Source: Zygnema circumcarinatum SAG 698-1b
Taxonomy: Eukaryota > Plantae > Zygnematophyceae
DNA: 64,000 nt
Assembly (NCBI GenBank): GCA_037447605.1
Contig: CM074805.1
Location: forward strand, 2,265,361-2,329,360
Direction: 5' to 3'
Shown: one piece after another, positions 28,766 through 52,494 of the stretch
How the letters are laid out: each line of letters starts with the position of its first letter
How positions within the stretch are numbered: the first letter of the stretch is position 1
Position numbers and translations under genes: made by a program
The notes under the pieces: generated by a model
What the model was told of the DNA's origin: nothing
Seen by the model: only the letters and a program-made list of their open reading frames with translations
Database searches by the model: none

Positions 28766-31759
28766 ATGATGGAGCAGTCCCAGCAGCAGCAACAGGTGGG
28801 CTTGCAGTCCATGGGGCATCCGGGCTACATGGCTCCTCCTGGGCATTACCCCATGCAGCCACCGCCGCCATTCGGGCAGGCTCTAGCTTCTCTGCCTACT
28901 CCTGGGCTGGCGTTTTTTAGCCCCTGGGAGCCACCGCCTCACGTCACGCCTCCTCCTTCTGATGCCGACCTCCAGAAGCGCATTGACAAGCTTGTGGAAT
29001 ATGCTGTCAAGAACGGGCCACAGTTTGAAGCTTTAATGAAGGAGAAACAGAAAAGCAATCCTGCCTATGCCTTTCTTTCCGGTGGTGAAGGCCATGAGTA
29101 TTACCGCTATAGGCTCTGGAGTGCTGTGACTCCGATGCCTGCAGCCGGCATGCCGAATGTTCCACCCCCGTTACAGCCGCAGCAGACTTTTGGAGGGGGT
29201 GGGTTAGGGAGTCAGTCTGATCCTGCTTTTGGGTCAGGCCTCCCGTTCTATGACTCGCAGGTGGGAGTTCCCGCTCCTCTCCCTGCTGTGCCATTTCTGG
29301 CACCGTATTCGACCGCCACGGTCGGAGGCGCCGACCAGTTCCGCTATCACTCGGCTCCCCCTCGACCGTTTGGTGTTGATGTTTCTGGCGGAGGGGCCGG
29401 TGCTCCTTTTGGAGGAGCTTTGCCACCCGATGTTTCAGCGGAATTGACGCAGATGCTGGAGTCGCTGACTGGGACCAAGGAGGTAATCAAGAATGCGAAG
29501 GGGTGGTTCATGCAAAGAGCGGTATATTCGCAAGCGCTCGTGGAAGCCTTAAAGAATCGAGTGAAGTTGCTGTCAGGAGATCCAGAAAGACAGTTGCACA
29601 TCATCTATCTTATAAACGACATTCTCTTTAACAGGTATGTATCACTTTTATCAATAGTTTTGTCCCTTGAGTCTGTTCTCAAAGCTTATTCATTTCCCTT
29701 CTTTGGGAGGTACAGAGCTTTTTTGCGAAGCATATCAAATTTAACTAGTGTTATTGAGGTGCCAAATGCCTAATGAACATGATAATTCGACTACTGTAGC
29801 AATGGACAGTTTAAAGGTCCACACCTTAAACCTCTTAATTTCACAAATATTTCACGACGGCTTTGTGATGATGAGCTCAAACCTTGTAAAGCGAGAAAGA
29901 GCAAAAGGATCTCTCTCAATCTGATAAGTTTGCTTACTTTCATCAGAAATAAAGAAAAAACGCTAAAAATTCTAAATCGAAATGGGGCAGCGAACTAGAA
30001 AGACCCAATTAAGCCCATGTGTTCACTTTTCCATTCCATCGTTTGAAGATATGGAGAAATTCACAACTCAATGAACCACCAACCATACACAGCGATAGAA
30101 GCGAGGTGTACTATAGATGCTTGAACTTCCGTTGGCAAAGACATCTTTATCGTGCATGTCCAGAAATTCTCTGTCATATCGTCTCCATCCCCCGATGTTG
30201 TCAACTGTTGCTGGGAGTTTCTTTCTATCAAATCTTCAATGAATATATAGCTATGAGCGCTCAACCCTAGTTTCCTGCTGAGACAACTGGAAATTCCTGA
30301 TGCAAATGGAAACTACATCTAAGTAAAAGTGTTCACTATGAATACTTTATTTTCTTCGAAACTTTGGGTGTAGTCGTTGCAGCGCGGTCATTCACTGGAA
30401 GATATGACTTTTCCTTTGTAGCTTAGCACTTTTGAGGCACTCCTTGTTGCTAGATAAGTTGCAGGGCAAGGCTATTTGGTTTCGTGGTCAGGCAGAAGGA
30501 TGGCACTTGCTATTTTTTAAATGGATTATGCACTACTTTACTTCTTTACTCGAACTATGTTGTGCCAATGCATGACGAGGATGGGGCTGAGGCCGCAGTC
30601 TGCAGCACAGGTCGGCGCCCACAGAGCTCGACCAGGTAGCCCTCGCATTCCGCCCTGCTTTAGGCGTCATCCTGGCTACCATCTACCACGGAGCCAACAA
30701 CTCGGATGCCAATCAGGACCGCCTGCGCAAAATACTCGATTTCTGGGGGGCGAAAGAGGTGTATGACAACGACACCATCAACCAGCTGGAGGGAGAAATG
30801 ATGGCTGGTCCGCCTCCTTCCGAGCTAACAACTTCGATTGGGCCGCCCGCAGCTCCTGGTATGCCCAGCTCTGCAGACTTCAGTCCTGTTTCTCCTTCTG
30901 ATTCGCGTCACGTGAACGACACGAGTTTGTTTTCTGCTTCCTTTATGACAGTCGCCATGAAGATGTGAAACTCAATCAAACAGGAAGTATCTGTCCACTG
31001 CTAGCGATCTCAGTGCTCGGGAGCTAACGCTGTCTATGAGCGCTGAACCTATCGCCTGATGACGCGTGTCCTGCAGGCCTGTTCTTTCCAGCGCGCTGGC
31101 CAGCCCCCGAGCAGCAGGCACTGGCCCAAGTGCCCTTCCTCGCCGCGGGGCCATTTCCTCCTGCTTCTGCTCCGGGGCTCTTCCCCTCTGGGCCGGGGCC
31201 GGCCCAGTTTCAGCCGGCTTCGGTCCAACCGGCCCAGCAAGAGCCCGGCCCGCCCGAGCAACCGCCATATCCTTTGTTTCCGCCAGGTCTCATTCCGGGG
31301 ATGGTCAGGAAGATGCAGATAGGTAGTGGGGTGCCGTATGCGTCGATCAGTCCGGCGGATATACCGACGCAGATCCCTCCTCAAACAGTTTCCGAATCGT
31401 ATATATTGAAGAGAATAAAGAAATACTTTAAGGCTATAGGGGAAGTGGATCCCTTGGAGGGTCAGGTTGATGTGCCGGAGGATGATGATGATAGGGAAGG
31501 CGAGGGGATTGGACTTGGTGGCGCCCGAATACCGCCGCCGGCAGTAATGGAAGTGGACCCCGAGACCGGCACTTTGCCGGATGGCAGCGTTGCCAGCAGA
31601 GGCGGCTTGGGGTCCAGTGGGCGAGCAGGCCTAGGAGCCCACGATCCCGAGGAAGAGAGCCAATATGACGATGTATACAGCTCGTATAGGAAGTCTCGGA
31701 GCTCGAACTATCATACATCGCTGAGTGTAAGAGCTGCCATGAAATATGAACATGCGTAA
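28766..31759 (+). CDS. CHERP-like SURP/SWAP plus CID-domain splicing-associated protein
   Basis: SURP domain ([50 protein letters not shown]); CID domain ([16 protein letters not shown]...[14 protein letters not shown]|SLQHR...[16 protein letters not shown]); Pro-rich linker; C-terminal [16 protein letters not shown]. Exons 28766-29634, from 30599, and ~31077-31759. Confidence 0.87.
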
Positions 31760-33772: not shown

Positions 33773-36700
33773 GGGGCGTCCTGCGCCGCGCCTTCTTCGC
33801 CCTGGGGCAGAGGGCGCCGGGGAGAGGATGGGCCGCGGATGGGAGCTTCGCGGCAGAGTGAGTATGGTGGCGCAGCGCCTGCTCTGCGCTGCTCGCTGGC
33901 GTGCTTCTGGCTGCGTCCTTGCTTTGGCCGGTGAGCTTACTCCCGGCACAGTGGGCTTGGCTGCCTTTTCCGCAGAGCCGGCCTGCCAGGTCCGTCGCTG
34001 GGCGCGCATTCGTCTCAGACTCGGAGGCGCATGTCAAACCTGCCCGAGTCTACGGTGTACGGAGGGCCAAAGTCGCAGTCGCCGTGGAAGCGCGTGACGC
34101 TCTTGCAGCTGGCGCTCAAGTATAAGAGGCAGGAGCCTATCTCCATGGTCACAGCTTACGACTATCCCTCGGCAGTCCATGTGGACATGGTGCGTCTGCC
34201 GCTCATCGGCAACCTCTCCGCCTTGTTTCAGAGTTAGCGGCATTACACGTGCCAGTTGTTCTAATGGTGCAAGAATCTCAAGCTCAAAAGTTGCTTGAAC
34301 TATGGAGCACAGAATCTTGATGCGTTTATACATTGGACGTTCTACAATGCTTCTGCTTTCTCCATGGCCTTAAGTTCGCTATGTTTAATCTTGGGAAACC
34401 TCCTTGGTTGTATATTTACAAAGTCGATCCATTTCAGCGTTTCACAAGTAGGTGAATTTAATGCATTAAATGGATTGGATCTGCAGGCTGGCATTGATAT
34501 CTGCCTTGTGGGCGATTCTGTGGGGATGGTGGTGCACGGTCACGACACAACTTTACCAGTCACCATGGAAGACATGGTTCGCCATTGCCAGTGCGTTATG
34601 CGCCATTGACTAAAATAAATCATAAAAAGATTAAACTGCACCGGACAGCATCTTTATTGGCCTCGCCACCGTGAGATCAATGCCAAATCCATACTCCTTT
34701 TTCTTTTTATTGAAAGAAATAGGTTCATTCAAACCCCGTTGTGCTCGTGTATTTGGTTTGCACAGCCGCCAAGTTTAGCATTTACTTGTAGCTCGATCCT
34801 GTATTAAGTGCGTGAAAGGTGTTCATCCGAGCTGTCGTTTTGTTTTGTCTGAGTTATAACTAGCCTTTAACACATGCGAAGTCTATAGACAATTTAAAGG
34901 CTGCTTGTCAGCATAGAGCTCATTTAGTGCCATTCTTGCTGCCCTGGCATAGCATACTGCCCCGTTGCCCTTAAGCACATGCTGTATAATGTTTTGTTTG
35001 GTGCCCTGCATCAGCTGCTTGAGGAAGTGAACGAATCAAGATAAACATGTTTTAATGATTCTTCAGCATTTGCCGAATTGCGTCAGTGAAGGCCGCGGTT
35101 CAGAGAACTGATATATTAGGATATGCGTATAGGGCTGTTGCGAGGGGTGCACGAAGACCTCTCCTGGTGGGAGATCTGCCTTTCGGAAGTTACGAGCAGA
35201 GCACATCACAGGTGTGAATAGAGCTGCCCGTTCCACTCCTCAAACACAATTATCGCAGTGGATGGGCAATCACTCTATATAGGCCATAATGCAGAATAAT
35301 AGGATGCCTGTGACAAAAACGGAACAGCTGCAAAACGCAAATGGAGATGGAATTGCTAGAACTTTTCGACTTGCCACCTGAATTTTTTTAGAGCCATATG
35401 ACTCTGTAAGCGATGGCGGTTTCAATGAGACATTCATGTATGATTTGTGCCATTCACTATTTGCAGTCAGTAGATTGTCGGCACTATTCGCTGTTATGGA
35501 CCTTTTGCCTGAGAGTTGGCAGCGTTGATGTTGACAGGTGACTTCTATTCTCGGATAATGCAGATTCTTCCTATTCTTTAAGAAGTACCGCTTTTGAGGC
35601 TGGAAATCTGTCCAAGTGACATGTCCAGCGGGGTCGCAGGCGGTGGACAGTGCTGTGCGCCTCCTGAAAGAGGGCATGATGGATGCGGTCAAGATCGAGG
35701 GGGGGGGGGCGGCCCGAGTGGCTGCAGCGAAAGCCGTTGTCGACGCTGGCATTGCTGTCATGGGCCATGTGGGACTCACGCCGCAGGCCATAAGCAGCAT
35801 TGGAGGGTTCAGACCTCAGGGGCGTAGCGCAGCTAATGCTGTCCAGGTCAGAAGCCTTATGAAGCTGAAAGCAGCATCCTATCTCATTGATCTTGTGCGG
35901 AGTCTGACCCATTGACGGTTTTGCACGAAAGCACGGGAGCTCAGTTCATGAGAGGATGTTTGCGTCCTGTAGGTTCTCGAGCATGCACGAGCCTTGCAGG
36001 AGGCAGGCTGCTTTGCTATCGTGCTTGAGTGCATTCCGTCTCCAGTAGCGGCAGCTGTCACAGCGGCTATTTCTATTCCCACCATCGGTATTGGAGCAGG
36101 CTCGCTTTGTAGTGGCCAGGTACCAGTTTGCCCTGCGCCATCCTTCTAATCAAAGTTGACGAGTAATCAATGCAGTCGCACTAGTTTGTCGTGATTGCGT
36201 TCCCGCATGGATTTTTTTATTTTTACCGTCAAGGATGATGGAGACAAGTGTGACTTAGCAGGGGAGCTGGTGGGATGTTTTGCAGGTCTTGGTCTACCAT
36301 GATTTACTGGGGATGATGCAGCATCCACATCATGCAAAAGTGAGTGATGCTCTGTACTGACTATGTCGGGAGAAGGAGCATCTTGATATGGAAAAGTATT
36401 GACAACATGTGGGAGAATGGTCTCTCACTTTTGCGTCGTGATGTATGGAGTTGATGTATACATTAGAGTTGGTGTTGCTAAAGGCATGGATAGGAAAGAA
36501 GAATCACGATCAAAGATAGGACAACTTCTGTTCTATAACAGGTTCTTGCCACAAAGAGTAAGGAGCCATCCCTAAAAATGGCGCAGCCAAGGAAGGGAAA
36601 GCTGCATCGTTTGAGCTTTTAAGGCAGAGCACCCACTGGGACGATCAATCGGTCTTGAATCAGGCGATGGAGAATACCGTGCTTCCTGAATGAAAGGCCG

Positions 36701-37106
36701 GAGTTGCCAAAGCGGGCTGAAGAAGCTCCCTGTCATTGGAGCGGTGAAGGAAGCAGACGTGCCTGCAGATGCGAGCAGAATAATTGCAGACTAGCTGTTG
36801 CCTTACTGTCATCACTGACGTCTAGCTGAGGTTGGGGATGTGCAGGTGGCCCCAAAATTCTGTAAGCAATTTGCACACGTAGGCGAGGTGATCCAGGAGG
36901 CCCTTGGCGCGTACAGGGAGGAAGTATCCACTCGCAACTTTCCGTCTGCCGCCCACTCGCCCTACCGAATTGAGTCCCGCGAGGCCGCTCTGTTTGTGGA
37001 GATGCTCCAAGGTCGCGGATTGGAAGCGGCTGCGCAAGCAGCAGCAGCAGCAGCGAGTGAAGATGACATGGCAGGAGAGCCGGGCATAAAAACACCGCCA
37101 GACTAG
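33773..37106 (+). CDS. panB: 3-methyl-2-oxobutanoate hydroxymethyltransferase (ketopantoate hydroxymethyltransferase) with mitochondrial-type presequence
   Basis: Presequence exon 33773-33857, then from 33976: [14 protein letters not shown]...VTLLQL...[13 protein letters not shown]; [31 protein letters not shown]; DLPFGSYE; AVKIEGG; [10 protein letters not shown]; LECIP; PTIGIGAG; [11 protein letters not shown]; PKFCKQFA...FP...HSPY; stop at 37106. Confidence 0.96.
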
Positions 37107-38047: not shown

Positions 38048-41000
38048 ATGGCGGACGCGGGGGAAGCGGAGGTTGCGGGGCCGTATGAGTCTTTGGGGGG
38101 GAAGAGGAGCTACAAGAGGACAGGAAGCTTGCCAGGGGGGTATGAGAGAAAAGTAGGGAGGCCCGTTTTGCTGCACACGAACAGCATACCAGGGAAACTG
38201 CTCGGGAGGTTTCTCAATAGGCCGCAGAACCTGGTGCCCATCTCCGAGGAGTTTTGTCAGCAGATTGCTGACAATGGGTATTCTGGAGCGTTCATTAAGA
38301 GCCACCTTGAGGTGAGTGTGTGAGGAGTTTCTTTCTGAAGCTCAGATATATCTAATGCGTCAACCTCCTGGTGGAGCAGGACATAGTGAGCAGCAGCTTG
38401 ACTCCTGGGGGTGGAGGTGGTGCAGTTTGAGAGTCTGGGAGACCTGCTGCCTGGCAGCGTCAGCCACACGGCCTTCATAGCTACCGACAACCGCAAACCC
38501 CTTAGCCATGCGCAACTAGCCTATGTGGCGCGCACAGAGTTTCCGCAGGTAACCAAGCTGCAAAAACGTTTCTGATAACCGGCAGAACAATCACTAAGCC
38601 GGCCTTATAATTAGTGAAATCCACTAATAGGCCTTTGATTCCTAGTATAGTTTTAACGACCTGAGCCTGCTGTCTGTTGGTGCAGGCACTGGATGCCTTA
38701 GAGGTGGAGCAAGGAACCCGCATCGGGCTGGTACTACCCAATGGGCCGGAGTTGGCTGTCGCTTTGGTGGCCTGCGCCGTCAACATCGCCTGTGCTCCCG
38801 TCAACCCGCAGGTGAGGGCTGCCACATGCTTTCAGATTTGAAGCCTCCCACCTCTTCCGAAAGGTGCAGCCATCAGATTGGCATCTGGCCTCACAGAATT
38901 CAATACCCTCCTTGGCTGTGTGCAGAACACGGAGGAGGAGATAGTGAGCGAGCTGAAGAGCGTGGGAGTGAGCACGGTGGTGGTGGGGGGGGGCGACACA
39001 ATGGCGGCGAGCGAGCTGAAGGGCGGGCTGCGGGAGGCCCTGGAGGCGGGCGGGCTGCGCGTGGTGGAGCTGCTGCCCAGCGCGGCGGTCTGCGGGCTGT
39101 TCTCGCTGCGCTGCGCGAGGCGGCCGCGGGCCGTCGTCGTCCACATGCGCGGGACCGGGACCCGCTCCGGCGTGGGGCCCCTCCCGAGGGCGCCCCTCGC
39201 CCGCGCGGAGGTGGCCATGGTCCTGCACACGTCCGGCACGAGCGGCAAGAAGAAGGTGGTCACGTACACGGTGGAGAATCTCGCCATCGGAGCGGCTCTC
39301 GTGGTGAGCTCGTGGGGTCTCCGCGCGGACGACGTCGGGCTGAACATGATGCCGCTGTTCCATGTGGGCGGGATAGTGCGCAACCTGCTCGCCCCCGTCC
39401 TCGCCGGAGGGGCCACAGTGCCCTGCAGGGCCTTCGACGCAGCGCAGTTTTGGGACCTTCTGGAGGCGGCCCGCGTGACGTGGTACTACGCCTCCCCCAC
39501 CATGCACCGCATGATTCTGGGGGAGGCCCGACCCTCAGTCTCTTCAGTCACTTCAGTGCGGCTCATAGGGAACGCGGCCGGCGCGCTGCTCCCCGCGCTG
39601 GCGGAGGAGCTGAGGGAGCGCTTTGGCGGCGCCGCGGTGCTGCCGTCGTACGGAATGACGGAGTGCATGCCCATCGCCTCGCCCCCCCCCGGCTACACGC
39701 TCGACCGCCCGGGCACGTCCGGGAAGGCGGTCGGCCCGGACCTGCAGGTTTGCGACCCCGCCGGCCGCCCGCTGCAGGCGGGGACGGTGGGCCGCATCGC
39801 GGTGCGGGGCCCCCCGCTGTTCGCCGGCTATGAGGGGGACGCGGAGGCCACGGCGGCGGCCTTCTTGCAGGACGGCTGGTTTGACACGGGCGACATGGGC
39901 TACCTCGACAAGGACGGCTGGCTATACATTACCGGGAGGTCCAAGGAGGTCATCAACCGCGGCGGGGAGATCATCTCTCCTTTCGAGGTGGAGCAGGCGG
40001 TCATTGCGCACCCCGCCATCAAAGACACCATCGCCTTCTCAGCTCCGCATGACGTGCTGCAGGTGAGCCCCCTTTTGTGCCTCTTCGATCCAAAGCCCCT
40101 TTGAATTCTCATCTCCGAGGGTGAGAGAGTGTAGAGAGTCAGTCTCGTAGAGCCCTCTTTCCCGCTTGAGCCGTGGTCTGAGCAGAGTGGAAGGGTGGCG
40201 GGTGCAGGAGGTGGTGGGAGTGGTCCTGGTGATACACGCGGGGTATCCCCGAGTGGACCTGCAAGAGCTGCATCGCTTTGTGGGCGAGCGGCTGCATCCC
40301 GCCAAGTGGCCCGTGGTGGCGGTGTACATGGACGCGGTCCCGACCGGCGCCGCCAACAAAGTGCAGCGCGTGAAGCTCGCGGAGCGGCTCGCCATGGCGG
40401 CAGTGGACGACTCGCAGCCGCAAACCGCCCGCCTCTATGAAGCCGCCTGCCCCCCCAAGGGCTCGCCCCTCACAGTGCCCATCCTCATGCTGCCCATCGG
40501 CCTGCAGGACGAACTCCTCGCCGCCGAGGAGAGTCTCTCCAAGGCGGCCGGCAAAGGCCGTCTGCTTGACGCAGGCATTGGCTACATGCGCGGCAATGCA
40601 GTCGCGTGTGTGGTGCCCCAAGACGAGAAGGCGTGGAGCGAGCAGGACGGCAAGGCCCTTCTCGAGATGGTGCGCGGAGAGCTGAACGCGTATGTGCGGC
40701 CGCGGAGTGTGGTGGTGGTGGGCCCCACCACCGCCGCTGCGCTGCCCCGCCTGAAGGACGGGACGGTCGATCTGAGCGCGCTGCCGCAGGAGGCGGTGCG
40801 GCCCAAGGACACGCTGGCCAGTCCCGCGGAGCTCGCGGTGGCCGCCGCGTGGAGTCAGGTCCTGAGCGTGCCGCTGCGGGACATCGGGAGGGACGCCGAC
40901 TTCTTCGAACTCGGCGGCTCCTCTCTCGCGGCGGGCCGCATGGTGGCCCACTTGCGGCGGCAGCTGGGCCTCGCCCTCCCCGCAGGGATCGTTTTCCAGC

Positions 41001-44000
41001 ACCGCACTGTGGGGGAGATGGGAGAGATGATCACAGGCCTGTTGGATGCCAATGCAGCCAAAGATAAGTCCGACGATCCGTCCTATTCTGGAAGGCAGGG
41101 AGACATTGAGTCGGGGTTCGAGAAAGTATTTGATGATGATGAGGCGGAGATCGCAGCCTGCCGACCGAAGAGCTCGACTTCTCCCACAACACTGCTTATC
41201 CAGCTCATTCCTCTCGTTTTACTGTACCCTATATCCCGGGTGTCCCTTTGGCAGCTCTATATCTTCTACCTCCACATTCTACGAGAGACTTGGTCGGTTA
41301 CCACCCATGTGACAAGGAAAGGTGTCGTTAAAGTTCACTATGTTCCATACGTGGGAATTCCTGAACTAATTCTGGCCATAGTAATGATTAAGATTACCGC
41401 AGACATTGTCATGCCACTTATCGGTATCGCCCTTAAATGGATCATAATTGGTCGATTCAAGGCCGGTCGATATCCCCTTTGGGGACAGTACTACTTGCGG
41501 TGGTTTTTGGTTCGGCAGATCTTGCACATCTGCCACCTGGGCATGTTCCGGTACTGGAAGAACGGGCACATCTGGTATTACCGGCTGCTGGGAGCGAAGA
41601 TCGGGCGCAACGTCCTCCTGCACGAGCGCGCGAAACTCGGGGAGTGGGACCTGATCACGATCGGCGACAACGCGTGGGTGGACCACGCCGTGCTGCGGCC
41701 CTTCTGCCTCGACCGCGGCTCCATGGTGCTGCGCGCCGTCGCCGTCGGGCGGGACTGCGTCGTCTGCCAGAAGACGACCCTCGCCCCGGGCACCGCCCTG
41801 CCGGACCGGACCTGCCTGCCGCCGTGCTCCTCCTCCTACGAGAGCCTCGACGCGGACCCCCGCTACCGCGACTACTGCCGAGTGGGCTTCCCCTCGCCGC
41901 ACTGGCCGATGCTGCTCTTCGTCGGCTATCCCATCGTGCTTGTGGGGAAGGTGGTGCGGATAGCGCCCTGGGTCGCGTGCCTCTTTCTATACGTCAGCCT
42001 GCCGCAGTTTCTGCATGCCATCAGCCAGGAGCAGCTTATTCTGTGGTTTGGAACGCCCGAACGTCTCCCGCTCTTTTTGATGCTCAAGGTGGTCCGCGAC
42101 TGCGTCTGCCCTTTCTACTACCTATCTTACGTCATCTGGGTTAAGCGAAATGTGGTGGGAAAAATCAAGCCAGGTCCGCGTGATCGGACACAATGGAGCC
42201 TTATGCAGCTTTGGCTCATGAAGCAACTCTTGCCAGGCCGCGACCTCGGAGGAGTGGCAGGGCTGGTTGGGCCCAATTTCGGTGTCATCAGCTTCATCTA
42301 TCGACTCCTGGGAGCGAAGGTGGGAAATCTATCATGCTTGGGAATTGTAAAGGCGGCTCTTTGGAAGTACTTTTTCGTTTGATTCATTCCACTGCATTTT
42401 AAAGTGGTCGAGCTCACAAATATGCATGCTCTGCAGGTCGGCAAGCACGTGTATTGGCCAGGATCGGGCGTATACGTGGAGGAGTTTGACCTTCTGGAAA
42501 TCGGCGATGATGTGGTTTTTGGCTCTCGGTCAGAAGTCATGTGCTGTGACGCGAAAAGCGCAGCCCCTGTTAAGCTTGAGTCCGGCTGCATGGTGGCCGA
42601 CAGATGCGTTATCCTTCCCGGCGTGACTATTGGACGAAATGCTACACTTGGCTCCGGCACACTTGCAGGTTCGTGCACACTTTTTTTTGGTGAACATAAT
42701 GGAGAGGTGATGCAGCGATGTTTGTGCAGAATGGTTTGCTTTATCTAACCTGTTCTTGCATTGTGTGCATGCAGCGCGAGGCATGAGCTTCCCTGCAGGG
42801 TCCACGTGGGTGGGGTCGTCCAAAGGCAACGCCACGCTGTGGGACGAAGGCCATCCTGCGGCGGAGAGTGCTCCGACCGCCACGCCGTACGCGCGCGCCA
42901 TGTTTGAGCGCAAGGCCAAGAACTACTGGGCGTGGCCCATGGGGATGCACGTGGCGTTCGCCATGGCCATGTCCGTACTCGTCTCGGCCTTCCACGGCAT
43001 CCCCATCGTGATGATTCTCGGCCTCACCGTGCACTGGGGCCAACCGTGGCTCACGGGAAGCAGCGGAGGCAGCGATTGTGAGCACTCCACTTACTAAGCA
43101 TGCGGGGTTGTTTTGCGCAATATTTTTTGTTTGGTTGTTTTCGAACTGCATGGAGTTACAAAATTGGTATAGAACCCACCATGTTTTTTTCAAATCGTGT
43201 TCACTGATGTTTATGTTTTCTGACTGCGTGCAGCTACAAGGTTGGCTACGTTATACGGAATCATGATGGCCATCGGTATCCTAGCAGTGATAACTGTGAC
43301 ATTTTTTGGACTACTCATTGTCATAATAGGTGAGGATGCTACCTTAATCTCGCTGGGGATTATAATGAAGCTTGTATCATGGGAGCAGACATGTGCAACT
43401 CGAAACTCCCAATCCTCACACTTTGGTTGTGCATGACTGGTACAGCGAAATGGCTCATCATCGGGCGACGGATGGAGGGCCGTTACTGCTGGGATGAATC
43501 ATCTTACAATCAGGTGAGTCGGCGGAATCGAGTGCCGTTAAACTGTTCAGGATGATATGTTCGAAGCGATGTAGTGGCCGTGTCCGCTGTTCACTGATCC
43601 ACTGCATTCTGCCTACTTGGACATGCGCTATGAAATCCTCCAGCACATATTGTTGGCCTGTCCGGGCACTAATCATTGCATTCAAGGATGTCTGACGGGT
43701 GCAGAGATGGCAAGTGATGCGGCGCATCGAGGGGCTGCGGTCGACGGGGGTGGGCGGGAAGGGCCCGCTGTCCTTTCTGTTTGGCAGCGCGTACCTTGTG
43801 TGGTACTTCCGCGCGCTCGGCTGCCACATTGGGAAGGACGTCTGCCTTTACCCCAACTCCGGCGACCCCATGATGACCGAGCCGGACCTGGTCACGCTCG
43901 AGGACGAGGTCGCGGTCGACGACGCGAGCCTTGTCGCGCACATCAACAGCAGGGGAGAGGTAAACAGCTCTAAGAGTGAATAATACCTGCCTCAATGCCC

Positions 44001-44402
44001 TTTTGCCCGATCCAAGGAGACTGTCCTCAGAGTGAAACATCTAAACGAATGGCCTAAGCCACCACATGAAACGAGTAAACAAACAAGTCTCAGAATGTGC
44101 ATGGCATTCTGAAGTGTGTATGAAACGTTCAGCAGGGACTGATGAACTTCAATGCTTGTCTGATGCAGTTTTCTTTGAATCGCCTACGAGTAGGAAGGGG
44201 AGCGACCCTTCGTACAAACTCGAGACTTCTTTCTGGAGCAGCCATGGAGGAGTACTCGATGCTGCTCGAGCACACACTGGTGCTGTCGGGAGACCTGGTC
44301 GATGCCCACAGCATCTGGCAGGGCTGGCCCGCCCGCATGGTCCGCGGGCCGCCGCGGCCCCGCCCCGAGGACGGCACCGTCGACCTCCACGCGGGGCACT
44401 GA
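38048..44402 (+). CDS. Membrane-bound single-module NRPS-like protein: adenylation domain, carrier (T) domain and three TM plus left-handed beta-helix repeats (Pls / TIGR02353-like architecture), 11 exons
   Basis: Exons 38048-38311, 38426-38548, 38686-38811, 38926-40062, 40208-42319, 42437-42668, 42775-43077, 43234-43329, 43446-43513, 43705-43959, 44169-44402, all GT-AG and phase-compatible. A-domain motifs LHTSGTSGKKKVV, MMPLFHVGG, PSYGMTE, GWFDTGDMG, ITGRSKEVINRGGEIISPFEVE, PTGAANKVQR. T motif FFELGGSSL. Three repeats begin YRLLGAKIG / YRLLGAKVG / FRALGCHIG, and the protein ends WQGWPA. Confidence 0.92.
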
Positions 44403-45602
44403 TCATATTATAAGGCGGCGGGCGCGCCCGCGAGGGCCTTTTTTTGCAGGAGGGAAGGGAGGGAGGGAGGGAGGGAGGGAGGGAGGGAGGGACGGATTTC
44501 TTGTATAGAAAAAGCTGCAGCTGTAGACACGTAGAAACCAGGATCGGCACGAAGCCATGAAGGCGGCTCCACATGGCGTCGCTGCTGTTTAACATAGTTT
44601 TTGGCATGGGTCACTACTCACTGTTCTTTAGTTTAGGAGTTGCTCAGGCAACCGCGCAGATAGATGGTGGGCATCAAGGATGTTCGCACAAATAAGAGGC
44701 TCTCCTGTAAGGGTCGAGCTTTCAATTTAATTTGTATAATTCTCAAAATTTAATTCCAAAATTTGCACATTACTGCTTCCGGAAATTACTAGTACTCTGG
44801 AAAACAAAGGGGAAATGGTATTGAACTCTGGGCATAGCGATCCCCATTCATAAGGGTTCTCCATACAACCAAAATCCAGTACTGTACTGATTTCAAGACA
44901 AAACATCCGTATGGTACTTTCTGCGCCACGTGACCTTTGCTCAGTTTTCAGTTCGCAGTTTGCAGTTTTTTAAGCTTTTTTTTTGGAGAATGCTACTGGA
45001 CCCCCCTATTTTAGTTATTACACCCCCCTTTTTGAAAAATTTGCCTGCCCATTCTGGTTATCCCACCCCCTGTTTTGGATATTTCACCCCCTACTTTGGA
45101 TATCCCACCGCCCTGTTCTTTCCTTTTCAGTACTGACTTCCAACATTGTGCAACAGAAGAAATGGAGATTTGCATTGATCTCAAGATGTTGGTTTTTGTC
45201 GCTATGCCTGCCGATCGGGTGCAGTAGTATTCTCCTTTTTTTTGTCTCTGGCCGCCGAGTCCGCCGCCCGGCGGCCATCCCGGAGCTGACGTGGCGCGGC
45301 GCCTTCGTCCGCCCCAAGCCTCCCGGCGCGAGTTTCCACGCGGCGCAGAGCACACAGCGCCACGTGGACAGACTGGGCCAATCGACGGCAAATCTCGTTC
45401 CTTCGCGCCACGTGTTCACCATCGGACGGTCGAGGCGGCCCACCGTTCCCCCCGATTCGGACGGCCCCTCGCGCCGCCCTCCCGATTGCGATCGCGGACG
45501 TGNNNNNNNNNNNNNNNNNNNNNNNNNNNNNNNNNNNNNNNNNNNNNNNNNNNNNNNNNNNNNNNNNNNNNNNNNNNNNNNNNNNNNNNNNNNNNNNNNN
45601 NN

Positions 45603-47562
45603 AATGCCAATGACGTTATTACTGACTGTCAGGTGACTATGACCCTGCGGCTTCCACTGTGTTGCTGCTCAATCGGTGATGATGTGGCACTAGTGATGAT
45701 GTGATGGTTCTGCAATCGTCCTATATAGACCTCTGTTAGTTAGGGCTTTTGGGATTGAATGTGGTGTAGGAATTGAATCCGGAAGCAGTGGAGAAGTGCC
45801 GCGTTGCAGGCGGCCTGATCGATCTCAACCACGACGGGAATGAATTCGTTACGAGCGAGCTCCTGGAATGGGTGCAGTGGATCACTCAGGTGATACGCTG
45901 CGGAGGTGTGCGAATTTGCTAGTCATGCATAATGCCATTGTGCTAAATCAAGAATTTCCAGAAGCTTGGACATGACTCCATCCATTTCCGGAGACAGCAT
46001 AACGGTCATCCTTTCAAACATAGCGGATCTTGTCTACGGTGACCAGCGGTTAAACCCAATCGAATCCCCATGCTGTAACGGAAGTGAACTGTCGCCTATG
46101 TTGAAAAAGGAGAGAAGTTACTAGCAGAAGTTGGAGATGAGGCTTCATTATAAGTGTTGCTGTGATTCATCTCTCTTGCATAGAAATAGAAGATGCCTCT
46201 TGAGTGTATACATTTGGCAGTCGGTAACCGTACTCTAGCAATGTTCATTGTATGCACCAGCTAGCAACTTTCTGTTCCAGATGTTGGGACTCCACAATGT
46301 AGCCCATATTGTGCAACCCACGTCTGCTTTTGTGTTACGCAGATCTTTGATTTTGACGGGTTGCGAATCGACTCTGCCAAGAGCATCCCAATCACGTTCC
46401 TGCGCGAATTAAATAGCGCCACGCCATGCTACACTCTTGGGGAGGTTTACCCTGGCGGAGAACTGCAGCAGGCGCTGTGCTTTATCGCACAATACCAATG
46501 GAAGGTTGGGGCAGTCAACGGCGCCCTCCTCATAAGCGCTGCCTTTTCTACAGGGCAGTGCGTGCAAACCAAGAGATTTATGAGTTAGCTCTCAGTTTAA
46601 TGCTGCGAGACTGTGTGCAGGGTGCCATGGATGCGCCACTATCGTACCCATTGGCCTTCACTTTGAGGAATGTATTCGGGCTCGGAACACCCATGACCGA
46701 CCTCAGCCTGACGAGAGAGGCATACAAGAATGCCGGCTTCACAGATCTCGACCTTCTCGCGGGGTTCCTCGACAATCACGACCTCGACCGCTTCCTCAGC
46801 TTGAACAGCGATCCGCAGGCTCTACGGAGTGCCCTTGTGTACCTCATGTTTGGCCAGGGCATCCCGATCCTCTACTATGGCACTGAGCAGGGCTACAGTG
46901 GCGTGTGGGTCAGCCTTCCGCGGGAATTGGGTCTAACTTTAGAATCTAAAAACAACAGCTAGATTGTGTTTATTCGACAGCGTTTCCATGCATTGTTGTG
47001 TTTGACATAAGGATGAAATCAATGCGTTTCGAAAAATTGGTCGAGGACTGACTAAGCAAACTGTGGCTCGTAACAGGCTTGAGAATGACCTGAACAGGAA
47101 ACCTCTTTGGTTCAGCGGCGCCTTTTCAAATCCTGCCGATAGCGATCCGCTACACGAGTTTGTGACTACACTGGTCGCGCTCCGAAAAGAGTTACAGGTA
47201 TGCTTCTTTCCTGAAGGTATAAAACAAGTGTTGACTACATGCTGCTCCTTACGCTCTCCTCCTCCCTCCCTCCCATGGGTAATTCCTCCCTTGACGGCGA
47301 TCAGCAGGTCTGGAACTATCCCCACGAAGAGAGCTACACTTCTGTATCCTTCCACGCGTTCACACGAGGCCCTGCTCTCGTCGCCCTTACCACCGCTCAA
47401 GAGACCGTGGTCGGCAGCATCCCCCCTGAGGGCCATGAGTACAGCGCGGGTCAAACGGTTTGCAACATGCTCTTTACCGCAGAGTGTGTGGTCGTTGGCG
47501 CTGACGGGGTTTTGACAATCACTTTGGAAGCCGGAGAACAAAAGATATTTACTCCTGCTTAG
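45603..47562 (+). CDS. GH13 alpha-amylase of fungal (Taka-amylase-like) type; 5' half lost in the assembly gap
   Basis: Exons 45603-45630, 45770-45889 (VEKCRVAGGLIDLNHD...ELLEWVQWI), 46343-46504 (FDGLRIDSAKSI; GEVY), 46621-46908 (GFLDNHDLDRF; GIPILYYGTEQG), ~47057-47197 (NRKPLW), 47308-47562 (domain C; AFTRG). All three catalytic acids are present. No region-I (DxVxNH) exon is seen before the N run. Confidence 0.85.
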
Positions 47563-48281
47563 TCTCAAGTAGTTGTCAAGTAACTACCAAACGACGCAAC
47601 ATGGTGAGACACATGCGGTGAACTGAGTCTAGCGGTGAAGTTAGATATCTGTATGCGGTGTATCTAGCACTCATATCGACTGAGTGTTTGACGAGGAATA
47701 GTGTGAGGTACACACAAGTTTAGTTCGCTATTTAGTTAGAAAGCGTGCAGGCATTTCGTATGAAGGATGTAAGCATGATATAGTGTGAAGGGGCCTCGAG
47801 TAGGAATTGCCTAAACGTGATGCGAATTACCTATTGCGGGAATAGGGCACCACTCACCAGAATCATTAAGAATCACCCCACCACCGAAGTTACATGTGTA
47901 GGTTCACAATACAAGCAAGACAGATGCCCTTCGAACTGCGCGTGCGCAAAATTTATGTGCAACTTGAATCGTACAATTTCAAATAATGACAACGCAACAA
48001 AAATTGATGCAAAAAATCAAGAGAATGCTGGTGAAACCTAACCTCCGGCCAAGGCTGCTGATTCCTCTGACCAAATCGACACTCTACCGTTATCGCCCCC
48101 CGAACACTTAGGTCTAAACAGGCGAGTCACGTTGGAATTATACCTGCAAAATTTGACAGTCTAACCATGCCAACCAAGACTTAGAAAGAAGACAATCAAA
48201 TAATCCTCTGTGTACGTCTAATTGTTCCAAAGTTTGCTTACCAAGCTTCCGAACAGAATACCCTGAATTCTGAAGAAGGCT

Positions 48282-51200: not shown

Positions 51201-52494
51201 CCTAACATACATAAATGAGCATCAACGTTGGACCAAAAGGATGAAGAGCAGTACCTGGTCTTGGGGGTAATCGCCCCCATTTTCAACAGGATGCTCGTTA
51301 GGGAACCGAATGTAGTCCAAATGGAGGCCATCAATGGCATAGCGCCGCACAATGTCGCTGCAAACTGCAATCACATGTTTTCTGGGTTCTGGCCAGCATG
51401 GATTAATGCTTACATAAAATCCACTCACCAGAGACTGCACATTCACAATCCACGACATTCTTAGATTAGAGAAGACATCCATACGGATGCACATACATAC
51501 GGATGCACATACATACGGATGCACATACATACGGATGCAGCATAACCGCCAGGTTCGGGGATGAGATCAGGAAGTATCAATGGACGAGCAAACCAATGAC
51601 TTAAGCATCCCTTCACAACGCTGCCGCTGGGTCTTAGTCAGTTTCACGCCAGACCTATTACAGCTAACTGGCAGTCAAATTAGCTAGTACAGGGGCAGCA
51701 TGCAAGCAAACAGGCAACAGTTCATTACTCCACTACGGAGACCGATTCTTCCTATGGACGGGAGGTTCAAATCCTCATAAACTTATTTCAGAAATCTAAC
51801 TCAATGACTGAATGCAGCGCAAGGAGCCCCTCGCACTTGGATGCAATAGCTAGCTGACTTTTGGTCTCGTTAACTAAACTGCCCTATAGGACTCTTGTTG
51901 AATGGAGGGGAGCTGAACGCATTGTCATAGGGGGTAGGACTTCCATGCCTGGCGCTTGCCATGGCGGTCATACCAGCTCCATTCAGGATGCGCATTGTAA
52001 AGCTGCTCCGAGTGGGACGGAGGGGTGGAGCCCCGCCACATAGGCATCACTGGAAAACATGCCGCCCTCAAAGTACGAGTGATGAACAAGGAATTCAGTT
52101 TTTTAGGGGTTTACTCTGCTTGGGAAATGCATATCTTACCATTTATCCACGCATGAAGAGCCATGTTATGCGAATGCGCCTCTGTGATGGCTAACTGAAG
52201 GGGATCAAACCCAGGGCTGCGCCAATCATAAACTTCGGACCAAGGCTCCAGCGCCGACTCATAGTGTGATGTTCCATGTCCTCGAACCTGCAGAAAATAG
52301 AGTCAATTTTTCTCTCTCGACACGTACAACGACACTCCATTTTGCAATTTCCAAACACAAGTTTAACACTATACCTGAAAGAACACAGTGTTGAAACCTG
52401 CATTCTTGGAGCGTTCCATGATTTGCACCACATCATTGTAGCCGTGGAAGTCATAGCGCGTTACCCAAACTGCTCTCACTTGGTCACCGTAACT
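48282..52494 (-). CDS. Glycosyl hydrolase-like 10 (GHL10/DUF187, YddW/DigH family) protein, multi-exon; 5' end unresolved (probably ~53300-53530)
   Basis: VRAVWVTRYD...AGFNTVFFQ (52494-52375); VRGHGTSHYESALEPWS...FDPLQLAITEAHSHNMALHAWIN (from 52287); HPEWSWYD; INPCWPEPRKHV...DIVRRYAIDGLHLDYIRFP (51434-51255); WDQWR|CDCVTALLRDIR; FQ|DVDTWWRERLVDAVVPMNY (from 49801); low-complexity tail to the stop at 48282. Confidence 0.87.
51477..51538 (+). repeat. 16-bp tandem repeat (CATACATACGGATGCA) x ~4, intronic in the GHL10 gene
   Basis: Directly visible perfect repeats. Confidence 0.9.

Follow-up and report, generated by a model that had tools for sequence, protein, structure and literature searches.

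Carrier-protein-dependent polymer synthetases are usually regarded as bacterial and fungal enzymes. Here we describe a gene of this kind in a streptophyte green alga; it lies at 38048-44402 on the forward strand of a 64,000-nucleotide stretch of the Zygnema circumcarinatum SAG 698-1b genome (assembly GCA_037447605.1, contig CM074805.1, positions 2,265,361 to 2,329,360), which we call the window and in whose numbering all positions are given. The closest bacterial systems are Pls and PosA, the synthetases of epsilon-poly-L-lysine and delta-poly-L-ornithine, in which an adenylation (A) domain and a thiolation or carrier (T) domain precede three repeats of a transmembrane (TM) hairpin plus beta-helix. 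In an AlphaFold model of PosA a six-helix membrane bundle carries the three beta-helices, which are related by a roughly threefold symmetry and whose packing resembles that of sugar-nucleotide acyltransferase trimers (PMC10522769). The polymalate (PMA) synthetase of the fungus Aureobasidium has been described as nonribosomal peptide synthetase (NRPS)-like, combining A-like, T and condensation-like (C-like) domains with six TM regions; deletion of its 5049-bp gene, PMAS, abolishes polymalate, and the proposed route leads from malyl-AMP through malyl-S-enzyme to the ester bond (PMC11286673, PMC9210645). Oxalate-CoA ligases of the AAE3/Pcs60 type, which resemble the algal protein over its A domain, are free-standing enzymes of about 510-545 amino acids (aa).

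The algal gene has 11 exons and encodes a product of 1649 aa (Table 1), which a first-pass annotation had taken for a membrane-bound, Pls-like NRPS. We find that it is a resident, expressed nuclear gene of the alga. Our reading of the product, to which we give about an even chance of being correct, is that of a single-module, membrane-anchored, carrier-dependent polymer synthetase from the polymalate-synthetase-like branch of the Pls/PosA superfamily, with a polymalate-type polyester as its predicted product.

Architecture of the predicted synthetase

To judge by profile and structure matches, residues 95-612 are a complete ANL adenylating enzyme of the oxalyl-/malonyl-CoA-ligase type. The large subdomain contains the motifs TSGTSGKKK (aa 273-281), MPLFH (313-317), YGMTE (413-417) and WFDTGD (489-494), and the ligase's own C-terminal subdomain carries GRSKEVINRGGE together with the A10 lysine in NKVQR (Lys601, 40358-40360). 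A FadD7-type ligase is the top NCBIfam profile (6.7e-68; full-length homologues span 490-503 of its 505 positions), and the malonyl-CoA synthase profile reaches 2e-49. The closest solved structures, in the range 1e-58 to 1e-46, are the oxalyl-CoA synthetases 6qjz (2.5e-58), 5ie0 (8e-56) and 8aff (1.6e-46), behind which malonyl-CoA synthetase structures rank at 1.4e-38. The amino-acid adenylation profile TIGR01733 gave 121 bits, below its cut-off of 317 (for this profile and TIGR02353 the algal protein was scored by exon piece, and its relatives at full length). PLFH (aa 314-317) stands in place of the FDxS motif of amino-acid NRPSs. The structure matches bear out the earlier proposal of an oxalate-CoA-ligase type of A domain. 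Alignments to homologues begin at about aa 45-80, within the N-terminal extension that precedes this enzyme.

The algal domain shares motifs A3, A7 and A8 with the oxalate-CoA ligases of known structure (5ie0, which is Arabidopsis AAE3, 6qjz and 8aff) but differs from them in the pocket, where it has FHVGG rather than FHVHG and YGMTEC rather than YAMTEA. We infer that these smaller residues (FHVHG to FHVGG, YAMTE to YGMTE) would give a larger pocket, compatible with a substrate bigger than oxalate. An alignment of 12 members shows the same A4 and A5 pocket motifs, NMMPLFHVGGIVRN and VLPSYGMTECMPI, letter for letter in all three of the alga, Aureobasidium and Physarum, and A3, A5, A7, A8, Lys601 and Ser789 are all intact in the algal protein. 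A further difference from the oxalate-CoA ligases is that the algal domain does not stand alone but is joined to carrier and membrane modules; its acyl acceptor is presumably phosphopantetheine, against CoA in the free-standing enzymes.

Between the ligase and the T domain lies the relic of a second A-subdomain, of the NRPS type. The region matches Pfam AMP-binding_C weakly and, among PDB sequences, the A_sub-PCP units (A-subdomain plus carrier) of LgrA and PvdL; an AlphaFold2 model of the exon-5 product (pLDDT 89.8) falls on NRPS A_sub-PCP units in Foldseek with probability 1.0. Against P0138, a bacterial Pls-type protein, A-subdomain and T domain are colinear (BLASTP, algal residues 682-1346 on 451-1067, E 2e-33; phmmer, 685-839 on 454-608, E 4e-14). 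The A10 lysine of the relic is replaced by Thr736 (LKDGTVD) and is lost in every eukaryotic member aligned; the algal protein shares both this lysine-less relic and the A-domain motifs of the family in the 12-member alignment, and across 67 members those motifs vary little or not at all. The predicted phosphopantetheine attachment site of the T domain, Ser789 in FFELGGSSL (GGSSL, aa 786-790), is present exactly where it had first been noted, at codon 40922-40924, and is invariant across 67 aligned homologues. These features suggest that the family is a chimera, descended from a Pls-type ancestor whose adenylation core was replaced by a complete oxalyl-CoA-ligase-type enzyme; we found no mention of such a replacement, or of a relic A-subdomain in the eukaryotic family, in the literature examined.

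The C-terminal module of the protein consists of three repeats of a TM hairpin and a hexapeptide beta-helix. In repeat 1 the TIGR02353 match covers profile positions 37-192, hydropathy peaks over the hairpin, the C1 domain begins with KWIIIGRFKAGRYPLWG, and in the AlphaFold2 model two long helices (aa 876-912 and 930-963) lead into the strands of a beta-helix, with a weak Foldseek match to maltose transacetylase 2ic7. The exon-6 part of repeat 2 matches Pfam Hexapep (9.4e-10) and TIGR02353 (1e-6), and the modelled long helices lie at aa 1116-1146 and 1169-1200. In repeat 3, exon 10 matches TIGR02353 at 8e-6, and exon 11 matches the very end of the profile (positions 641-695 of 695) at 4.9e-8; the C3 region (aa 1465-1632) aligns with residues 1158-1318 of P0138 (BLASTP E 5e-12), and the repeat closes with WQGWPA at 44316-44333. 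BLASTP shows the three repeats to be homologous to one another (E 6e-17, 8e-11 and 2e-7), and phmmer shows their homology to the C-terminal module of P0138 (domain E 4e-22, 5e-17 and 3e-12); the TIGR02353 matches fall at the corresponding Pls/PosA profile positions. Profiles, hydropathy and repeat homology thus confirm the Pls-like layout proposed in the first-pass annotation, an A and a T domain followed by three TM-hairpin and hexapeptide repeats ending in WQGWPA, and the homology of the repeats to C1-C3 of Pls. Together with the gene structure and transcripts described below, these features lie far outside chance expectation. By analogy, the pseudo-threefold packing modelled for PosA is likely to be found in the algal protein as well. 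The synthetase contains neither a thioesterase nor a classical condensation domain, and no solved structure matching the membrane module was found by sequence search.

The label 'Pls-like NRPS' can be retained in part. The triple TM/beta-helix layout behind the T domain is that of Pls and PosA, but the A domain is not of the diamino-acid, or any amino-acid, type, and the TIGR02353 scores of the algal exon pieces (104.6, 27.4, 24.4 and 31.8 bits) are below the cut-off of 423.1. The Spizellomyces, Aureobasidium, Physarum and Guillardia members also remain below it (186-220 bits), against 589.8 bits for P0138, a true bacterial Pls-type member with a true amino-acid adenylation domain. Going by these scores and domains, the algal protein belongs to a eukaryotic sister family of Pls/PosA, not to Pls/PosA proper.

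Table 1. Position of the synthetase gene, its predicted protein features and the neighbouring genes in the window
Feature	Position	Strand	Evidence or remark
Exons 1-6	38048-38311, 38426-38548, 38686-38811, 38926-40062, 40208-42319, 42437-42668	+	transcripts and homologues
Exons 7-11	42775-43077, 43234-43329, 43446-43513, 43705-43959, 44169-44402 (including stop)	+	transcripts and homologues
N-terminal extension, aa 1-94 (exon 1 and start of exon 2)	38048-38443	+	no family match
Large N-terminal subdomain of ANL adenylating enzyme, aa 95-505	38444-39927	+	Pfam AMP-binding 1.7e-42
C-terminal subdomain of the ligase, aa 506-612, split by intron 4	39928-40393	+	NCBIfam ligase profiles reach their C-terminal ends (exon 5)
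Relic second A-subdomain, NRPS type, aa about 685-765	40610-40852	+	colinear with bacterial P0138
Carrier (T/PCP) domain, aa 770-838	40865-41071	+	Pfam PP-binding 1.2e-15
Repeat 1: TM hairpin aa 876-963, C1 hexapeptide beta-helix 964-1112	41183-41893	+	TIGR02353 4.7e-30
Repeat 2: TM hairpin aa 1116-1200, C2 hexapeptide domain 1201-1375; spans introns 5 and 6	41903-42905	+	Hexapep, TIGR02353
Repeat 3: TM hairpin aa 1386-1464, C3 domain 1465-1630; spans introns 7-10	42936-44342	+	TIGR02353, hydropathy
SWAP/CID-domain, splicing-factor-like gene	30454-31756	+	apparently intron-split
PanB (ketopantoate hydroxymethyltransferase), directly upstream of the synthetase	33935-37106	+	Pfam PF02548 on four exon pieces
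Alpha-amylase family gene	46265-47583	+	apparently intron-split
GHL10 glycosyl-hydrolase-like gene	51225-51566	-	apparently intron-split

The predicted reaction and its alternatives

The Aureobasidium pullulans family member P0225 (1690 aa) fits PMAS in size, given the 5049-bp gene, and in its described architecture. It is homologous to the algal protein from end to end (36.6% identity over 1698 columns, residues 45-1647 of the alga against 66-1688), and both proteins join a ligase-type A-like domain and a T domain to three TM hairpins (six segments) and three C-like hexapeptide domains, lack a thioesterase, have identical A4/A5 pocket motifs and score similarly below the TIGR02353 cut-off. 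The fungal polymalate enzyme, which the earlier annotation had mentioned as a parallel, is therefore relevant as more than a mere analogue. The algal gene differs from it in its ten introns and in its place in the tree, on a branch that it shares with Coccomyxa and a further alga, separate from the fungal clades; the calcium/Crz1 regulation of the Aureobasidium system is not applicable to the alga.

In the reaction that we propose, the N-terminal ligase-type enzyme would adenylate a small hydroxy-dicarboxylic acid, most likely L-malate, and the acyl group would be moved onto the phosphopantetheine arm at Ser789 and not onto CoA. Three helical hairpins would keep the three beta-helix domains at the membrane, where these would form a pseudo-trimer and catalyse attack on the thioester by the hydroxyl of a free monomer or of the growing chain. 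Repeated cycles would yield a polyester, beta-poly-L-malate or a close analogue, freed without a thioesterase; as in Pls and PosA, chain growth would probably take place on a free acceptor without a thioesterase domain. The bond expected is an ester, against the isopeptide bond of Pls/PosA products, and the predicted functional A domain, unlike theirs, is a complete oxalyl-CoA-ligase-type enzyme placed ahead of the relic A-subdomain. The data show the structure of the gene, its expression and splicing, the domain anatomy, the homologies and the intact motifs, while substrate, product and the membrane that would hold the enzyme are inferred. The first-pass annotation had left open whether the acid is polymerised or exported, or transferred to an extracellular glycan. 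The end-to-end alignment with the Aureobasidium member and the identical pocket motifs lead us to favour polymerisation of a hydroxy-diacid, and acylation of a glycan has become the less favoured part of that proposal.

Several points nevertheless count against a polymalate synthetase. Within the family, experiments back the Aureobasidium PMA synthetase alone (PMAS of A. melanogenum, reportedly from Wang et al. 2020), and that evidence is genetic only; P0225 fits the published PMAS by size and description, not by accession; and no polymalate from algae was found in our literature search. The hexapeptide domains, moreover, resemble the exopolysaccharide O-acetyltransferases WcaF (1.3e-8) and HpsU (5e-8), weak matches which, like that to maltose transacetylase by fold, would suit an enzyme that loads a small dicarboxylic acid (oxalate, malonate or malate) on its carrier and transfers it a single time, to a polysaccharide of the wall or mucilage or to some other acceptor. 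Such a single acyl transfer would also accord with the nearness of the A domain to oxalate-/malonate-CoA ligases, whose substrates have no polymerising nucleophile. We consider it unlikely, however: all characterised proteins with the triple TM-hairpin/beta-helix module are homopolymer synthetases, namely Pls, PosA (PMC10522769) and PMA synthetase (PMC11286673, PMC9210645), and the pocket motifs equal those of Aureobasidium and Physarum and are unlike those of the oxalyl-CoA synthetases.

A polymerase of the same mechanism might also use another monomer in the algal clade, a different hydroxy acid or an amino-dicarboxylic acid, and so make a polymer not yet described. Some fungi have several paralogues per genome and the branches of the family tree are deep, so that substrates may differ between clades, a further point against polymalate as the product. 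The algal protein is only about 37% identical to the Aureobasidium protein, and together with its counterpart from a related alga (described below) it sits on a long branch, more than 2 substitutions per site from any characterised member. The A4/A5 motifs are, however, letter-for-letter the same in the algae, Physarum, Guillardia and Dikarya, which argues for one substrate throughout the family, and we rate a change of monomer as improbable to much the same degree as a single acyl transfer. The polymalate-type synthetase remains the reading that we prefer.

Physarum polycephalum is the other classical producer of polymalate. Its family member P0212 (EukProt Phypoly_transcript_00199) is full-length (1728 aa), 41% identical to the algal protein, and scores 220 bits with TIGR02353. 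The Physarum polymalate synthetase was called unidentified in a 2022 review (PMC9210645), and P0212 is, from its sequence, an obvious candidate.

Gene structure, expression and neighbourhood

We assembled the gene model from reading frames, GT..AG sites and alignment to full-length homologues, and then compared it over 38300-44299 with transcript contigs from four public runs of three studies (X1, X2, X3 and X6). The coding sequence (CDS) runs from an ATG at 38048, with an in-frame stop 26 codons upstream, to a stop codon at 44400-44402, and is interrupted by introns of 106-209 nt. The ten canonical GT..AG introns first noted are all absent from spliced contigs of the four runs: introns 2-10 are seen directly as joints, and at intron 1 (38312-38425) the contigs end at 38424, their loose letters being the end of exon 1. 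The longest contig (4878 nt) covers almost the entire CDS. We conclude that the gene is expressed and productively spliced in the alga.

Two modifications of the model were considered and rejected. An acceptor at 38416 for intron 1 gave a slightly better homologue score, but the transcripts favour 38425. A hidden in-frame intron in the low-GC part of exon 5 (41.0-41.5 kb) is contradicted by the contigs, which cross this 2112-nt exon unbroken, and by the related alga, which has the same stretch.

Run X3 also contains a low-depth contig that is unspliced over intron 4 (40034-40232) and a second that begins within intron 1 (38365-38544); these may represent pre-mRNA or minor intron retention. The contigs of run X2 are those of a variant allele or strain, with seven substitutions, A>G at 40730 and six more between 41038 and 41125, and with 9 nt (GGGCCGCGT) inserted in frame behind 40740, within the relic A-subdomain; runs X1, X3 and X6 match the window. 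Just past the stop, in the presumed 3' untranslated region, there is a short run of GGGA/GGGAGGGA units (44447-44492).

A related alga has a homologue, which lies on genomic contig L001 of a different sample (run SRR9302961). The exon-5 product of this homologue is 58-59% identical to that of the window gene, other exon segments reach up to 78% (tblastx), and its exon boundaries coincide with exons 2-9 of the window gene. An alternative is that the synthetase is fungal or bacterial contaminant DNA, or a decaying relic of a transfer, instead of a working algal gene. The patchy distribution of the family over eukaryotes would be compatible with this, as would the GC content at third codon positions, which is 0.78 in the synthetase CDS and 0.55-0.66 in sampled neighbour exons, a difference to which we attach little weight. 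Against it stand the ten spliceosomal introns, all removed in transcripts; the second alga (59-70% protein identity), which shares the exon boundaries and has a plant-type UPF0426 gene on the same contig; the position of the gene on one contig between the intron-bearing SWAP/CID, PanB and alpha-amylase genes; and 1649 open codons with every catalytic motif intact. We regard contamination or decay as very improbable indeed, and spliced transcripts, shared intron positions and intron-bearing neighbours uphold the initial judgement that this is a resident nuclear gene. GC content varies widely among the synthetase exons themselves, from 0.41 (exon 8) to 0.71 (exon 4).

PanB catalyses the first step to pantothenate, the precursor of the phosphopantetheine arm. 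Its adjacency to the synthetase is probably due to chance, because no PanB adjoins the homologue on L001.

Distribution of the family and its significance

An exhaustive, profile-free search with the exon-5 product returned many proteins of 1500-1750 aa that align over the same span; the family proteins that share the architecture measure about 1500-1800 aa. A search with exon 5 (704 aa) over lengths of 387-1232 gave one close relative, P0001 (58%), plus fragments, and is uninformative on full-length relatives. The window's own protein was not among the matches of any database search. The spliced model is 37-44% identical to family proteins from about aa 80 to 1630, with 40-44% for the members from Spizellomyces, Guillardia, Coccomyxa and Physarum. 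In fungi the family occurs in chytrids, Mucoromycota, Ascomycota (including Aureobasidium pullulans, Fusarium and Trichoderma) and Basidiomycota; beyond them it is found in the cryptophytes Guillardia and Hanusia, a pelagophyte, a diatom and Physarum polycephalum. Gene models are already present for the green-algal members of Coccomyxa sp. Obi (P0294) and Mesostigma viride (P0029), and the ESM Atlas has a cluster in which most of the members assigned to a phylum belong to Chlorophyta.

Two maximum-likelihood trees, from a quick search with SH-aLRT support, pair the window protein with its L001 counterpart at full support and place the two apart from every fungal clade. Their sister is Coccomyxa (support 94%), and Mesostigma is placed apart, near Physarum. 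Placing all four green-algal sequences in one clade is rejected by an approximately unbiased (AU) test (p 2e-9), a result that is indicative only since the group was named after the tree had been seen. The separate positions of the Coccomyxa and Mesostigma members point to old paralogy or separate acquisitions, as far as trees whose deep branches are short and weakly supported allow. Recent transfer from fungi or bacteria is unsupported, as no fungal clade includes the algal pair and the distance to the bacterial Pls type is very large; from these sequences we claim neither an origin by transfer nor vertical descent.

The first-pass annotation had implied that the gene is singular, no such product being known to it from streptophyte algae. 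This stands in so far as no paper on the family or on polymalate in algae was found, and our literature search on NRPSs in streptophyte algae gave nothing useful, but the family itself is widespread in eukaryotes, Coccomyxa and Mesostigma included. Architecture and family are already published, and the gene brings no new kind of system. What it does bring is a resident, expressed carrier-dependent synthetase of a polymer-making family in an alga closely related to land plants. The comparison also shows that the family to which polymalate synthesis is assigned in Aureobasidium has members in many eukaryotic groups, Physarum among them.

The gene thereby leads to the prediction of polymalate or a similar polyester in the alga. 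To our knowledge, no polymer of the polymalate class has ever been reported from the plant lineage. We think it possible, at somewhat less than an even chance, that this alga and by extension several green algae make beta-poly(L-malate) or a related polyanionic polyester, or alternatively that the polymer of the algal clade is one not yet described, made from a different acid. If this is true, the algal polyester could serve in mucilage, in the binding of metals or calcium, or in the buffering of nuclear proteins as in Physarum.

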